A stretch of DNA of 64,000 bases, from the NCBI RefSeq assembly GCF_000189555.1, contig NC_017276.1. One strand, written 5' to 3'. The translations under genes and the position numbers were made by a program. Shown piece by piece: positions 47,914-54,016 of the stretch. Below the pieces are notes generated by a model that was not told the origin of the DNA, made no database searches, and was given only the letters and a program-made list of their open reading frames with translations. How positions within the stretch are numbered: position 1 is the first letter of the stretch; every line of letters begins with the position of its first letter. The DNA comes from Saccharolobus islandicus REY15A. GTDB taxonomy: Archaea > Thermoproteota > Thermoprotei_A > Sulfolobales > Sulfolobaceae.

Positions 47914-49329
47914 TCACTTTATTTTGAACTGTCTTAACACATTGTTTCTATGAATGTACTTTGTAATAGTTGGTGGGACTATAACAGTACCATTTCCCTT
48001 ACCTATAACCTTACCTATAATGTGAGGCTCTAGCGACTTTCTCTTCAACTCATCGAAAATTTCATCAATAACCTTCTTATGAGCAAAAATAACTATAGCC
48101 CCATTTGTCCCTGCAGTAGAATTTGGTATGATAAAATTCTCTGTTGCAAATTCATGTATATCTGGGTCTATTACTGGGATATCGAACAGCTCTACATCTA
48201 CTTGTGCCTTTTCAGCAAATTCCTTTATCACAAATAACCCTGGACCAGTAACATCAGTGGTCATAGCTATATGAGAGTTTTCGTCAAATGTCCCTCCAAA
48301 TGGTGGTAGATGATCATATATTATCTTAGCTATCTCAGTATTAGGTTCTCTCATGTAATTTAGAGCCTTTTTCTTAGCTTCTTCCACTCTCTGTATGGTA
48401 ATTCCCCTAGCTTCCATATCTTCTATTAGCTCTGGTACAGTCAGCATCCACATAAAGACGTTTATTGGCGTTAATTCACCAACTGGTCTAGTCACTAAGA
48501 TTTCCATATTCTCATTAACCATATTGTAGTATGTCGGTAATTCGTGATCGGACTTACCTATTACAGTAGCTCCTATCATCAACGTCTTGGAATTGGGTTG
48601 AACATCACTTAATAATTCAATTGAATACTCTCTAGAGTAATTTTCAGCATTTCTTAGCAATTGTTGCTTTAGATCATCAGTTGGAGCATCAACAACGGGG
48701 ATCATTCTTAAATCTTGAAAAACGCCCTTAGTGAAAAGATCATTTAGAGAATTGGAAATGGCAACATCGACTTGCATCTGAGATCCTGGATCATCCAAGG
48801 GATCTACTATTTGAATCGTATCGTTATTTGCAACAGTGTAAGATTTCTCCTTTGCTCCATCAAGTCTGAATAGATCCAATACTGCCACTTCACCCTTGGG
48901 ATTTGAGGTAACTATTGAATGTCCTTTACCTATTGTGAGCTTTCTGCTAGTTTTTATCGAAGTGTAAACTTTCAGTAGAAACTCAGCGAATTTATCTGGA
49001 TTCCCTGAAGTCTCTTGATTGACTTGAATAAGGCTAACAGCCCTATCCGCATCAAATTCCCCACCGTTTATTACTCTCTTTATATAAATTTTCTCTCTGC
49101 TTACGAAAATATCAGCATCTTCTCTAGGTAGTATTTCTATATTTCTTCTAACCAGCTCATCTCTTATCTTATGTATGGCTGGGTAAACTGTATCTATTAG
49201 ATCTACTTTTACTGCACAACCGGTTGCAAGGGATAATGGATTCAGTCCCATTTTTTTGTACTTATCTAAATTAACTCTAAATTTATCAATCAGCTTATCA
49301 ATAGCCATCAAGTTAGCATATTCTCCCAA
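47914..49329 (-). CDS. SelD-like (selenophosphate synthetase / PurM superfamily) protein
   Basis: N-terminal GCAVKV (CxxK, TGT codon), [23 protein letters not shown] motifs. Confidence 0.8.
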
Positions 49330-49450
49330 GAAAATAAAAAGTTAGCTATCATAATGTTTATACATTTTTTGTAACTTTCATTTTAAATAAAAGTAGTTTT
49401 GAAAATCAAAAATTCCAACAAATTTAAATTCTCAATAAAAGGTTTAGATT

Positions 49451-49858
49451 ATGATGTTAATAACCGAGAGAAGGTCCCCTTTTTATCCTAACATACAAAA
49501 CGTACCGCCATCGGTAATTAGAAAACTTGTCAAGAATAAGGAAATTCAACTAATTGATATTAGACAACCGTGGGAATACGAAGATCACCATATATCGGGA
49601 TCAATATTATTACCTTTGGATTACTTTGAAGACTTATTTCAGTTAATGTTAAACAAAAGTAATATAGGGATTATATGTGAACACGCCAATAGGTCTACAT
49701 GGCTGGTTTATACTAAACCTTCTCTATTTAAAGAAGTAAAAGTTTACAATATGTTAGGTGGAATAGAATTGTGGATGATGATGGGCTATGAAGTTGAAAA
49801 AGGAATGGATGATAATGGTACATTATGGTATAAATTACTAACTAAAAATTTAAGATGA
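49451..49858 (+). CDS. Rhodanese-domain sulfurtransferase
   Basis: IDIRQPWEYEDHHISGS, active loop CEHANRS, GG...W. Confidence 0.88.
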   Translation: MMLITERRSPFYPNIQNVPPSVIRKLVKNKEIQLIDIRQPWEYEDHHISGSILLPLDYFEDLFQLMLNKSNIGIICEHANRSTWLVYTKPSLFKEVKVYNMLGGIELWMMMGYEVEKGMDDNGTLWYKLLTKNLR

Positions 49859-49911
49859 AGCTACTTTTTGCATATAGCGAAAGTCTTAAGAAATATGAAT
49901 AAAAACATAAA

Positions 49912-50151
49912 ATGATGGAAAGACTTCCGCCCTCAGCAAAACTTGTATTAAAGGTTATCTTGGAAAAGAAGGTAATTAGATTTAAAGAATTGCAGGAGCA
50001 AACTAAATTACCTACACGTACGTTAAGATATGCTCTAAGAGTACTTAGGGAAAAAGGCCTAATAAAAACACTACCTTGTTTAGATGACGCAAGAGAAAGA
50101 ATGTACTCACTATATGAGATAGACGAGTGCTATAAACTGTTTAACGATTAA
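49912..50151 (+). CDS. Small winged-HTH regulator
   Basis: LPPSAKLVL...TRTLRYALRVL...DARER.Y. Confidence 0.8.
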   Translation: MMERLPPSAKLVLKVILEKKVIRFKELQEQTKLPTRTLRYALRVLREKGLIKTLPCLDDARERMYSLYEIDECYKLFND

Positions 50152-50501
50152 AACTCTTCCATTTCTTCTGCATACATTTCTTCTTCTAATTCTTCCTTCA
50201 TGTTTTTCTTTATCTCCTCTAAATGCTCCAATACTTCCTTGAGATTTCCATATTTTGTAGGAATATATCTTAGTCTACCGTACGACATCATATAAGAACC
50301 GGGGCATAAGAACTTCGGGCCTACCACTATTGCATCTACATTTAGATCTAAAATTACTGACATGGTAGCCTCTTTGCTACCTACTCCAGGGTTCTCATAC
50401 TGTTCAACTTCCCTTTTCTCCTCATCAATGATTCCTATAATTTCCGCTTCGTCGAGAGGTTTTAATTCTTGTGACTTATCATATGTTAAAGCTATTCTCA
50501 T
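50148..50501 (-). CDS. NifB/NifX-like (dinitrogenase cofactor-binding fold) protein
   Basis: YENP...L..VDAIVV...CPGS pattern; 117 aa. Confidence 0.5.
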   Translation of the reverse strand: MRIALTYDKSQELKPLDEAEIIGIIDEEKREVEQYENPGVGSKEATMSVILDLNVDAIVVGPKFLCPGSYMMSYGRLRYIPTKYGNLKEVLEHLEEIKKNMKEELEEEMYAEEMEEF

Positions 50502-50570
50502 AAGCCTCTATTTCAAAACATTTCTTAAATATTTTGTGATCAATAGAGTTAGAAAAATTAGGAAAAAAAC

Positions 50571-51704: not shown

Positions 51705-52078
51705 ACCGAAATTATTTGTCCACCTTCAACATCCATACTAAATGTAGTTATGCCAGCTATTTCATCAACTATGTCACTATAGTCATCTTTGGTATATCCA
51801 AATAATTTGCTAGCATAAGAGCAAGCGTATATTTTAACCTTACCGCTCTTCTTAGCTTTTCTAAATAAACTTATATAATCTTCTTCTTTTTTCTCAACCA
51901 TAGTCTTAGAAGATATGTCTTCACTCTTTACTTCTGGATTTTTAGTAAACCCCTTAACTGCATCCATTGTCAAAAAGACGTAAACTTCATCACCAATAGA
52001 TGATACTATAACTGTACTCATTGCGGCATATGTTAATCTTGAACGTTCATTTGAGCCCACTATGATACCAGTCTTCAT
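51698..52078 (-). CDS. DsrE2-like (DsrE/F family) sulfur carrier
   Basis: [24 protein letters not shown]. Confidence 0.8.
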
Positions 52079-52079
52079 C

Positions 52080-53237
52080 TTAAACCACAGCTTTAGCTGT
52101 AACAGTCCAGTACATCTTATTGTACATTATCTTTCCCCACCAATGTACATATGAAGGTGGTGGTGGACTCTCGTTCATAGTATAGCTGAATCTTATGTAA
52201 GTCGCTTGATCAGTGCCAGTAGCTATATAGCATAGAACATCTCCTCCATAGTGTTTAACTCCAAGATTACCCTTTATGTCGTTTGCAATATTGTGAGCAA
52301 CAACATAAGATTCGAAATCTGCAGTTGAACCTGCCTTAGAAACTGGCAAATCAGTAGCATCACCCATTACGTAAACGTTAGAGTGATCCTTCATTCTAAG
52401 TGTAAATTTGTCTGTTGGAACCCATCTCCTTCTATCACCTATTCCAGAGTCCTCAATAACCTTAGCACCCATATTGGGCGGTATGCCAATCAGCATATCG
52501 AACTTTAACTTCTCACCTTCTTGGGATTCTATAACTTTGTTACTAGGATCAACACTGGTTACCGTAAATGGTGAGTGAACCTCTATTCCTCTTTGTTCAA
52601 ATAATCTCAGCATAAACTTGTTAGTTATCGGCCTACCAAATACTCCTTGAACGGGATATGTGTAAATTATTTTAGTTTTATCCCTAATCCCTCTCTTTCT
52701 TAAATAATCGTCCAAAATTAATGTAGCTTCTAATGGAGCTACTGGGCATCTATGAGGTAGTTTTGCCGTGTTAACAACAATTGTACCTCCATCAAATTTC
52801 TCCAGTGCTTCCCTCATTTTAATAGCAGCATCATACTCGTATACCGTATGTGCAGCAGATCTATAGCCTGGAATCTCGTCCCATGTGTAATCCACACCCG
52901 TAGTTATTACCAAGTAGTCATAGTTATGTGACGCTCCATCCGCGGTTTGAACTGAATGATTAGCAACATCTATCTTACTAATCGTACCCTTCTCTCCATG
53001 TAGGAATTTGATTCTAGGATCCAGTAATTCGCTCTCTTTTCTAACTAATTCACCTGGAGTTTCGAGACCAAAACCAACTAATAGTTGTCCTGGCAAATAG
53101 ATGTGCTCATCTGATTTATTTAACGCTACTATTTCAACGTCTCCTCTATTAACCTCGTGTTCTAGCTTTTGAACTAATCTGTTTGCTACAATCGTACCCG
53201 CAACGTTTCCTCCTGCTATTATAATCCTTTTAGCCAT
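52080..53237 (-). CDS. Sulfide:quinone oxidoreductase / FCSD-like flavoprotein
   Basis: N-terminal Rossmann motif, [24 protein letters not shown]. Confidence 0.82.
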
Positions 53238-53249
53238 TTACTTCATCTC

Positions 53250-53495
53250 CTATTTACTTATCAATAACACGTATTTGCTACCTTCTTGTGATTCTTGGAC
53301 GATCTTTAAACCCCTCTTCTTACTCCACAAAGTAATGTCCTTTTTAGTAGCATCATCACCCAAAATAACCTTAACTGCTTCGCCCTCCCTCAACTCATCA
53401 ACAACACTAGACAACTCACCAATAGGCCCAGCACATGAAGAACTAGTTAGATCAAGCTCCTTATATATCTTAAGACTACTCAATTTTTGACTCAC
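53250..53495 (-). CDS. TusA/SirA-family sulfur carrier
   Basis: LDL...CAGP; 81 aa; D...I..W. Confidence 0.85.
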   Translation of the reverse strand: MSQKLSSLKIYKELDLTSSSCAGPIGELSSVVDELREGEAVKVILGDDATKKDITLWSKKRGLKIVQESQEGSKYVLLISK

Positions 53496-53653
53496 CTATA
53501 TTCTATGTTACATTCATACTTTATAAATATTACGTTTATTTCAACAATATATTTTTTCAAGAATGTTATTACTTAATTTAGTTATACCTAAAATTACAAA
53601 TGTTTTTAAATTTAAGTATCTCTATACTGTATATAATTATACATAAAACTACA

Positions 53654-54016
53654 TTATGAAATTATAAGCTGGAAATCTTTGTTAATCAAATCAGTGAAAG
53701 CGTAATGATGTTCCTCATCTCCAATCAATTTTATTGTGTTAGATAGTTTATCCCTAATGTTCAAATGAGGTGGAGATGCGCAATAACCACACGCACCTAA
53801 TACAATGCCTTCTCTTAACGCCTTTTCATAGGCCGGTCTTAATCCTTTATAGGGACTTTCAGATACTGGTATTTTAGTACCTAATCCATCAAAATAGACG
53901 TAAACCTCATGTCCTTCTTTCTTAAGCTCTACTGCATAATGTAGGGCATGAGCTGCCCTTATGGATTCAGATAGATTATTTGGATCATCCATTATTACGA
54001 AAAGAAGTTTAGCCAT
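53654..54016 (-). CDS. DsrE-family protein
   Basis: A.H.A.EL, V.VYFDGLG, ACGYCA. Confidence 0.8.
   Translation of the reverse strand: MAKLLFVIMDDPNNLSESIRAAHALHYAVELKKEGHEVYVYFDGLGTKIPVSESPYKGLRPAYEKALREGIVLGACGYCASPPHLNIRDKLSNTIKLIGDEEHHYAFTDLINKDFQLIIS

Follow-up and report, generated by a model that had tools for sequence, protein, structure and literature searches.

A SelD-related protein in a sulfur-trafficking locus of Saccharolobus islandicus, and cysteine-forming enzymes beside distant members of its family

A family of SelD-like proteins in which the residues of SelD are conserved has been described in Sulfolobales and Thermoproteales (Li et al. 2014, BMC Genomics 15:908; PMC4210487). 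The neighbours of these genes encode SirA/TusA, a 'Prx-like' COG2210 protein (equivalent to the DsrE type) and rhodanese, and in Thermoproteales an acylphosphatase is fused to the SelD-like protein. A thiophosphate synthetase was proposed, an acyl-(thio)phosphate model was also offered, and a role in selenium metabolism could not be excluded; no selenium trait is known in Sulfolobales or Thermoproteales (PMC4210487). The same study raised a tRNA-dependent cysteine route, sought in Crenarchaeota only, where SepRS and SepCysS are absent. A review of May 2026 still calls the role of the family speculative. On the selenium side, SelD is genomically linked to YedE and to the TusA-like YedF (PMC5322559), a parallel to the import of thiosulfate by YeeE with the TusA-like YeeD (PMC11073785). 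Here we analyse a member of the SelD-like family encoded in a 64,000-nucleotide stretch of Saccharolobus islandicus REY15A (contig NC_017276.1), hereafter the window, in whose numbering all positions are given. A sequence-only reading of the window had described a SelD-like synthetase embedded in a 'complete' sulfur-relay cluster. It rightly stated that such a family had been noted computationally near sulfur genes in Sulfolobales; its thiophosphate pathway, offered as an inference of its own, is the hypothesis already published by Li et al. The copy in the window is a standard one, from a family that is known but biochemically uncharacterised, and is not a new discovery. The new lead is the adjacency of distant family members to cysteine-forming enzymes, which makes the published question more concretely testable.

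The SelD-related protein (471 residues, 47914..49329, minus strand) matches NF038049, "SelD-related putative sulfur metabolism protein", with 725.3 bits against an NCBIfam cutoff of 250, its residues 16-470 covering positions 2-465 of a 465-position model. It scores 23.1 bits with the true SelD model TIGR00476 (cutoff 125) and 52.4 bits with NF010705 (cutoff 291), and no Pfam family matches it, AIRS included. Lying above the NF038049 cutoff and below those of both SelD equivalogs, it belongs, on the curated thresholds, to the SelD-related family rather than to SelD itself. The protein is 95% identical to annotated Sulfolobus proteins, and since homologues begin at Met8, the actual start is probably the ATG at 49308, giving 464 residues. 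In an alignment of 30 relatives with 39-73% identity to the window protein, the Cys-x-x-Lys motif that the sequence-only reading had pointed out (C38 and K41, in GCAVK) is invariant in 30 of 30, and further invariant positions include D43, R69, D71, G134-K-G-H-S138, N168-N-D170, D176, N193, N196, D197, H353, D359 and T408-N-G410. Every member examined has Cys at the active site, and a UGA/selenocysteine (Sec) codon was never seen there. Addition of the Escherichia coli SelD sequence from the MG1655 record to this alignment, together with motif reading, places C17, K20, D51, D68, N87, D91 and D227 of SelD opposite C38, K41, D71, D170, N193, D197 and D359, so that all seven residues checked are retained. 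The interval between D71 and D170 is about 100 residues in the family versus 17 in SelD. This family-specific insert, at approximately residues 72-167, bears the invariant G134-K-G-H-S138, of which Lys-x-His is retained in catalytically intact divergent members.

The AlphaFold2 (AF2) model of the protein has a pLDDT of 91.8 and a pTM of 0.90, with low confidence only at residues 1-5 and at 35-39, the Cys loop; the N-terminal Cys loop of SelD is likewise mobile. The best Foldseek matches are human SPS1, Leishmania SPS2 and the SelD proteins of Aquifex aeolicus and E. coli (3fd5/3fd6/5l16/2yye/3u0o; E=3e-17 to 1e-15), with target-normalised TM values of 0.59-0.71, and HypE and ThiL follow close behind (E=6e-14). 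A search of the family profile against PDB sequences returned nothing at E<=0.01, and the single-sequence search returned only a weak SPS2 match.

Gene neighbourhoods were surveyed at 91 loci with a SelD-like gene (4 genome loci, 7 contigs of diverse homologues and 80 metagenome loci), which reduce to 25 lineages at 80% identity; neighbours within 6 kb were clustered by BLAST, named with Pfam and re-scored with family hidden Markov models. Eleven lineages at >=56% identity are referred to as Sulfolobaceae and the other 14, at 38-44%, as distant. TusA occurs in 20 of the 25 lineages (7/11 Sulfolobaceae, 13/14 distant), and in 13 of the 14 distant lineages its gene lies <=300 bp from the SelD-like gene, mostly abutting or overlapping it. 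Of the 14 distant lineages, 10 have a fused or adjacent acylphosphatase, as against 0/11 Sulfolobaceae, and these partners retain the Arg and Asn that form the acylphosphatase signature. SQR with DUF1641 shows the opposite distribution, with 5/11 Sulfolobaceae and 0/14 distant lineages. TusA is accordingly the constant partner of the family, joined by acylphosphatase outside Sulfolobaceae, and the SQR-DUF1641 pair is a Sulfolobaceae-only addition. DsrE-type genes are found in 11/25 lineages, rhodanese in 10/25, MFS transporters in 6/25 and YeeE-type sulfur transporters in 5/25. The clustering of SelD-like with sulfur genes is not due to chance, the window's block recurring in five Sulfolobaceae lineages and TusA far more widely. 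The arrangement itself varies. Sulfurisphaera has a co-directional tusA-sqr-dsrE-DUF1641-SelD-like string with gaps of <=50 bp; in Metallosphaera and Sulfolobus acidocaldarius there is no SQR and only the rhodanese adjoins the SelD-like gene, together with a winged helix-turn-helix (wHTH) gene in S. acidocaldarius.

The NF038049 family is small: a HMMER search over 1.84 billion representatives recovers 95 clusters (50% identity) at E<1e-30. The majority of the divergent full-length members examined retain C-x-x-K, Lys-x-His, a central Asn/Asp motif, N-x-x-N-D and (T/R)-D-x-(S/T)-G. In one divergent member, P0211, the catalytic Lys (GCSVELD) is gone, as are the Asn/Asp of N-x-x-N-D and the Asp context of TDxSGPG; this protein is probably a paralogue that has become inactive. 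By source name and sample type, members come in part from Thaumarchaeota/Nitrososphaeria metagenome-assembled genomes (MAGs) and marine metagenomes. One lineage, named for a 'Thaumarchaeota archaeon' MAG, comprises 10 related loci with SelD-like, several of them from marine metagenomes; at the MAG locus itself, two TusA genes and a tandem rhodanese come after the SelD-like gene, and a YeeE-type transporter and a third TusA lie upstream. Such loci show that the family is not confined to hyperthermophiles or sulfur respirers. Another contig, k141_1014645, carries OmpR-type regulators and is probably bacterial; the family had been reported absent from bacteria. The distribution is therefore wider than in the 2014 report, extending to Thaumarchaeota/Nitrososphaeria, marine and probably bacterial members.

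Distant members also stand beside enzymes that form cysteine. In contig SRR29366204_42778 (1777-6438), the genes run NifS, NifU, SelD-like (353 bits with NF038049), a ThrRS-editing-domain-like open reading frame (ORF), a 60-aa ORF and SepCysS. SepCysS scores 517 bits with TIGR02539 (cutoff 365), SepRS on the other strand scores 484 bits with TIGR00470 (cutoff 381), and ThiI follows. The free-standing editing-domain-like ORF shares one base with the SelD-like stop codon, and it and the 60-aa ORF may be tRNA-handling or bridging factors. In k141_1014645 (6001-9086), a member with 313 bits shares 4 nt with a CysK/M cysteine synthase gene (TIGR01136, 374 bits, cutoff 344), and TusA lies 450 bp beyond. 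In Caldisphaera, a PALP gene for a 389-aa cysteine-synthase-like (OPSS-like) protein lies 134 bp upstream of SelD-like-acylphosphatase-TusA, and a related PALP gene is found about 6 kb from SelD-like in another lineage. The loci of three other divergent members have no informative neighbours. By a rough estimate, three operonic adjacencies with cysteine-forming enzymes in about 30 lineages are more than the approximately 0.1 that chance would give, in a small sample examined post hoc. NifS, NifU and ThiI occur near SelD-like in three lineages. Separately, a complementary distribution of SelD-like and cysteine desulfurase was considered and rejected: NifS adjoins the gene in several lineages.

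The pyridoxal phosphate (PLP) enzyme SepSecS can take its sulfur from thiophosphate, yielding Cys-tRNA, and the in vivo sulfur donor of SepCysS was listed as unknown in a 2008 review (PMC2275076, PMC2330236). Beside this precedent, the PLP enzymes next to distant members suggest a sulfur counterpart of the SelD-to-SepSecS route. In its most specific form, which we consider somewhat unlikely, the SelD-related enzyme would turn TusA sulfur into thiophosphate as the physiological donor for PLP-dependent cysteine formation on O-phosphoserine, whether free (OPSS, CysK/M-type) or tRNA-bound (SepCysS), and the acylphosphatase would hydrolyse an S-phospho intermediate or side product. Were this so, the making of selenocysteine by way of SelD and SepSecS/SelA would have its twin in sulfur metabolism, SepCysS would gain an identified in vivo donor, and cells would have a hitherto unrecognised activated-sulfur currency.

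More broadly, we favour, at a little under even confidence, the reading that the SelD-related protein is a PurM-superfamily, ATP-dependent sulfur-activating enzyme that draws on TusA and serves cysteine-forming PLP enzymes, most likely by a SelD-like mechanism with sulfur replacing selenium. It builds on what the analysis shows: the identity of the genes, the conservation of key residues, the fold predicted for the protein and the neighbours that recur. We infer the substrate, the product, the direction of sulfur flow and the consumer as follows. The sulfane sulfur on TusA, as Cys-S-SH, would be passed to the mobile N-terminal Cys38/Lys41 loop and phosphorylated there by the gamma-phosphate of ATP, bound by the conserved Asp/Asn set. 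It would then leave as thiophosphate, a plausible product and a water-stable, non-oxidising S(-II) donor, whose consumers would most likely be PLP-dependent cysteine-forming enzymes. The feeder in the window would be specific to Sulfolobaceae: an SQR-type flavoprotein would oxidise sulfide and send electrons to quinone through a DUF1641 scaffold, the persulfide from this step would move to DsrE4 and TusA, the divergent rhodanese would act as a second loader, and the small wHTH protein would be the likely regulator. If thiophosphate is made, it would be an ATP-activated reduced sulfur parallel to selenophosphate and outside present textbook sulfur metabolism, with a bearing on how organisms of sulfide-rich, hot or acidic habitats safely pass sulfur on to cysteine, cofactors or tRNA, and on the divergence of selenium and sulfur pathways. 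The question is directly testable because the family is conserved in genetically tractable Sulfolobaceae.

Several points weigh against this scheme. The role of the family is still 'speculative' in the 2026 review, and the protein falls below the cutoffs of the SelD models (23 and 52 bits versus 125 and 291). The insert of about 100 residues with its invariant Lys-Gly-His is foreign to SelD, for which reason the chemistry may differ. A catalytically intact acylphosphatase accompanies the protein in most distant lineages, and a simple thiophosphate synthetase has no obvious need of one. SQR cannot be an obligatory feeder, since it is missing from most lineages, S. acidocaldarius among them. Conversion of a persulfide to S(-II) requires reduction, for which the scheme names no reductant. 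Finally, the link to cysteine enzymes rests on three or four loci in about 30 lineages, none of them Sulfolobaceae. The relay-fed thiophosphate synthetase of the sequence-only reading survives in part: the SelD residues, the fold and the TusA, DsrE-type and rhodanese neighbours agree with it, and thiophosphate remains a putative product. Its route from SQR to DsrE, TusA and rhodanese does not hold as a general feeder, its model leaves the acylphosphatase partner unaccounted for, and the completeness it ascribed to the cluster cannot be defined.

In the window, the proposed feeder genes form a minus-strand operon. It opens with tusA (53250..53495), for an 81-aa protein (PF01206, 52.3 bits versus a gathering threshold of 28.6) with the active-site Cys21 in S-S-C-A-G-P. 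After 12 nt follows the gene for the SQR-like flavoprotein (385 aa, 52080..53237), which matches Pyr_redox_2 and FCSD_central; its best NCBIfam match is the type III SQR model, built on a selenoprotein subtype, at 349 bits with a cutoff of 525. Among solved structures the nearest relative is human SQOR (E=2e-30), and the two cysteines within HRCPVAPLE and DVLCYIATG fall opposite cysteines of SQOR, the redox pair of that enzyme. Both redox cysteines appear to be retained, and the flavoprotein is predicted to reduce quinone. One nucleotide past the sqr stop begins the gene for a 126-aa DsrE-family protein (51698..52078; PF02635, 47.6 bits; PF13686, 26.9 bits). It had been labelled DsrE2, wrongly, because its score with the DsrE2 equivalog NF047629 is 18.6 bits and the cutoff is 210. 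The DsrE4 group is defined as encoded downstream of SQR (PMC4175335), and by gene context the protein is of DsrE4 type; the Cys in its K-I-Y-A-C-S-Y motif is conserved across 23 relatives, making it a sulfur-carrier candidate.

The last gene of the tusA-sqr-dsrE-DUF1641 series, for the 377-aa DUF1641 protein (50571..51704; PF07849, 53 bits at residues 334-372), starts within the end of dsrE, the two sharing 7 nt, and is translationally coupled to the flavoprotein operon. The characterised DUF1641 proteins HucM, ForE and Bacillus subtilis Ncp provide a scaffold for a quinone-reducing enzyme, membrane attachment and quinone conduction (PMC13524794), and the window protein is probably the scaffold and quinone conduit of the adjoining flavoprotein. 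Before the DUF1641 domain it has four helical repeats of about 73 aa, each with RDMLNDEAI at its end (residues 64, 138, 210 and 283); Tandem Repeats Finder detected no DNA-level repeat in the gene, so that the repeats are visible in the protein only. Characterised DUF1641 scaffolds are tetrameric tubes, and a single chain with four repeats might mimic the tetrameric symmetry in part. In a transcriptome study of three Sulfolobaceae, the genes listed as responding to sulfur include 'sqr-alt', 'peroxiredoxin' and 'sirA' (PMC11323534); these could not be mapped to this cluster and are a lead only, and the 'hypE' in that study is probably a true HypE. A PerR chromatin immunoprecipitation signal on a Sa. 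islandicus DUF1641 gene likewise could not be mapped to this locus.

Of the competing explanations, the one that fares best treats these genes and the SelD-like gene as two separate systems. The tusA-sqr-dsrE4-DUF1641 operon would work by itself as a sulfide:quinone module, in sulfide detoxification or respiration, and pass its persulfide to carriers for the Hdr-type oxidation pathway, and the SelD-like enzyme would use TusA or rhodanese sulfur on its own, the two sharing a sulfur regulon and not a pathway. We hold this unlikely, though much of the survey speaks for it. SQR and DUF1641 accompany SelD-like in fewer than half of the Sulfolobaceae and in no distant lineage, S. acidocaldarius and Metallosphaera have rhodanese and SelD-like without SQR-DUF1641, in Acidianus brierleyi a second DUF1641-sqr-tusA trio stands elsewhere, without SelD-like among the flanking genes listed, and DsrE4 has been proposed to detoxify reactive sulfur species (PMC11094781). 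In the window, moreover, SelD-like is a transcription unit of its own, and a convergent gene pair stands between it and the operon. Such a division is at odds with the Sulfurisphaera string, in which SelD-like is one of five closely spaced co-directional genes, with the recurrence of the linkage in four more genus-level lineages despite rearrangements, and with the DsrE-type genes that accompany SelD-like in lineages without SQR. Those genes belong to the same BLAST family as the DsrE4-type gene of the window, also where they adjoin SelD-like in Thermoproteales.

The next alternative assigns the enzyme another chemistry of the PurM superfamily. ATP would phosphorylate a carbonyl or carboxyl oxygen, as in PurM, PurL and HypE, TusA sulfur would displace the phosphate to give a thiocarboxylate, thioamide or thiocyanate-type product, and the acylphosphatase would act on an acyl-phosphate-like intermediate or precursor, in the way that the acylphosphatase domain of HypF handles carbamoyl phosphate ahead of HypE. 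The HypE and ThiL folds are almost as close to the model as SelD (E=6e-14 versus 3e-17), the acylphosphatase that is fused or abutting in 10/14 distant lineages has kept its signature Arg and Asn, the insert with its invariant Lys-Gly-His could bind a second, larger substrate, and an acyl-(thio)phosphate model was also entertained by Li et al. (PMC4210487). We nevertheless regard this chemistry as quite unlikely. The SelD-specific N-terminal Cys-x-x-Lys is invariant and the C-terminal Cys of HypE is absent here, no carbamoyltransferase (YrdC/Kae1-type) or ThiS/MoaD-type carrier gene recurs in the neighbourhoods, and Sulfolobaceae have no linked acylphosphatase.

The remaining genes of the locus stand outside the operon just described. 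All nine ORFs lie within 6.1 kb, with ends that coincide with the 47914-54016 given in the sequence-only reading, whose rhodanese, wHTH, DUF1641 and TusA labels likewise agree with Pfam matches; the G+C content of the region is about 35%. In order of transcription the minus strand carries the 120-aa ORF, a 158-bp gap, the four operon genes and, 69 bp further on, the 117-aa ORF. The plus-strand rhodanese and wHTH genes are convergent with the 117-aa ORF, and the SelD-like and rhodanese genes are divergent across a 121-bp spacer. The rhodanese (49451..49858; PF00581, 45.4 bits) is a single-domain protein with the loop C-E-H-A-N-R-S, and a single-domain rhodanese lies 120-170 bp from SelD-like in the window lineage, S. 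acidocaldarius and Metallosphaera. The 79-aa wHTH protein (49912..50151, plus strand; HTH_24, 23.3 bits versus a cutoff of 21.9) is probably a local regulator; the rhodanese-wHTH pair is also present in S. acidocaldarius and in a Saccharolobus MAG. A search for an operator common to the SelD-like/rhodanese spacer, the region upstream of tusA and the other intergenic regions found only the 8-9-mers expected in 70% A+T DNA, which speak neither for nor against co-regulation of the cluster. A tRNA search of the window found none, hence no tRNA-Sec there, and no selenium-pathway family appears among the 47 window ORFs scanned, as the sequence-only reading had noted for Sec and selenouridine genes; of the selenium-utilisation markers SelA/SelB or PSTK/SepSecS, MnmH and YqeB/YqeC, the window has none.

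Two small ORFs had been given family names that stand only in part. The 117-aa ORF (50148..50501, minus strand), called NifX-like, has that fold but not the sequence signature. It has no Pfam match, and neither it nor its 21 homologues match Nitro_FeMo-Co (PF02579) at E<=1. Its AF2 model (pLDDT 93.6) has NifX-type folds as its top six Foldseek matches (2re2 in two chains, TM 0.71; 2qtd, 1rdu, 2wfb and 2kla; TM 0.58-0.71 overall), which include Ta1041m, MJ0327, TM1290 and the Mo/Cu-cluster Orange protein (2wfb), so that it is best described as NifX/NifB-C/Orange-protein-like. With one invariant Cys (Cys66, in F-L-C-P-G-S-Y), an acidic C-terminal tail and 65-97% identity between Sulfolobaceae genera, it is a candidate carrier of a sulfur species or a metal-sulfur cluster, as judged from the model; it lies near SelD-like in 3/25 lineages. 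The 120-aa ORF (53654..54016, minus strand), called DsrE, is weakly DsrE-superfamily-like (E=0.065, 13.9 bits versus a gathering threshold of 22.7). Eleven of its 22 homologues match DsrE weakly (best E=0.0018), and its homologues are annotated in the sources as 'DsrE' or 'predicted peroxiredoxin'. Its invariant residues are C76-G-Y-C79-A-S-P-P-H, His23, His84, His104 and Glu101. We do not call it DsrE because hhalign of its family against the DsrE4-type family is not significant. It occurs near SelD-like in the window's own lineage only, and its part in the system is doubtful.

Directly downstream of the SelD-like gene lies a CoxM/CoxS/CoxL-type molybdenum hydroxylase operon (282, 163 and 749 aa; 44122-47708, minus strand), separated from it by 205 bp. 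The arrangement is shared with S. acidocaldarius at 68-83% identity, and in the close Saccharolobus MAG all that is left of the Cox genes is a CoxM remnant of 50 aa, with the SelD-like cluster intact. This neighbourhood allows a further explanation, which we judge very improbable: the enzyme would give the terminal sulfido ligand to the Mo cofactor of the adjoining hydroxylase, as SelD supplies selenium-dependent Mo hydroxylases, with the 117-aa protein as carrier. The same-strand order of the CoxMSL genes after SelD-like in both genomes, a CoxL paralogue that abuts SelD-like in Metallosphaera, and the fold of the 117-aa protein, which is that of Mo-containing-cluster binders, would fit. Against it, CoxL is near SelD-like in only 3/25 lineages, all Sulfolobaceae, the MAG has kept the cluster with a mere Cox remnant, and the 205-bp gap separates the two sets of genes. 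Sulfolobaceae carry several Cox paralogues, which would make a chance adjacency with SelD-like likely.

New SelD-dependent pathways keep emerging, such as that of selenoneine, and the catalytic residues here are the same as those of SelD. A selenium enzyme serving an unrecognised selenium use, which Li et al. could not exclude (PMC4210487), is nonetheless very improbable, given Cys and never Sec at the active site of the members examined, the failure of the SelD models, the lack of any known selenium trait in Sulfolobales and Thermoproteales (PMC4210487) or in the window, and neighbours that are general sulfur-trafficking, cysteine or iron-sulfur genes.

Beyond the Cox operon lie two minus-strand DUF2173 genes (43210-43990), for proteins of 103 aa and of 158 aa, the latter with a hydrophobic C-terminal half. 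A DUF2173 membrane protein is up 99-fold in A. brierleyi and 32-fold in Sulfurisphaera ohwakuensis on elemental sulfur (PMC11323534), and its link to the window ORFs is a candidate only. A minus-strand row at 40941-43127 encodes a 144-aa rubrerythrin, an HdrD-like CCG-domain/4Fe-4S protein of 395 aa and a 190-aa DUF3501 protein, a trio syntenic with S. acidocaldarius and the Saccharolobus MAG that could be a redox partner set for the adjoining sulfur genes. The plus strand at 30489-37891 encodes a terminal-oxidase pair, made up of a 509-aa haem-copper oxidase subunit I and a 557-aa cytochrome b, with a CopA-type copper P-type ATPase (755 aa) downstream; Sox oxidase genes also lie beside the SelD-like locus of S. 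acidocaldarius. On the other side, a fatty-acid or aromatic-acid activation cluster (54071-58526) abuts the sulfur genes and seems unrelated to them. Its AMP-binding (PaaK-like) ligase is confirmed by Pfam, and Zn-ribbon/OB-fold-like, thiolase-like and two enoyl-CoA hydratase-like ORFs were recognised by eye.

Compared with the SelD_rel_HyperS family of Li et al. 2014 (NF038049), the window protein is a typical member, with the same context and the same hypothesis and no difference at the window itself; what the survey adds is the marine Thaumarchaeota-type and probably bacterial contigs and the SepCysS/SepRS or CysK/M neighbours. With SelD/SPS the family shares the PurM fold, the mobile N-terminal Cys-x-x-Lys loop, the four metal/ATP-binding Asp plus Asn, and a genomic pairing with a TusA-like carrier, rhodanese and a YedE/YeeE-type transporter. 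In contrast to SelD/SPS, it is only about 16-20% identical, about 120 residues longer, and has the Lys-Gly-His insert and a longer N-terminal helix; it lacks Sec, occurs in organisms without selenium traits and has an acylphosphatase partner. Like HypE/HypF, it pairs a PurM-superfamily ATP enzyme, there acting on a cysteine-bound group, with an acylphosphatase, but the C-terminal Cys of HypE and the YrdC/Kae1 domains of HypF are absent and the N-terminal SelD loop is kept. The DUF1641 complexes Ndh-Ncp of B. subtilis, Huc/HucM and ForCE/ForE resemble the window operon in setting a DUF1641 gene by one for a quinone reducer of the NDH-2/SQR superfamily; the syntenic Ndh-Ncp pairing was found only in Bacillota in a 2026 survey. 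Here the partner is of SQR type and not NDH-2, a hydrogenase or a formate dehydrogenase, and the scaffold has four repeats of about 73 aa. Finally, the dsrE3A-dsrE2B-tusA/sHdr cascade of Sulfolobales (Liu et al. 2014, Tanabe et al. 2024) also relies on cytoplasmic TusA, DsrE-type and rhodanese carriers of Cys-bound sulfur, whereas the window cluster is without hdr and lbpA, its DsrE is the DsrE4 type linked to sqr, and its terminal enzyme would be an ATP-dependent activator in place of an oxidising complex.

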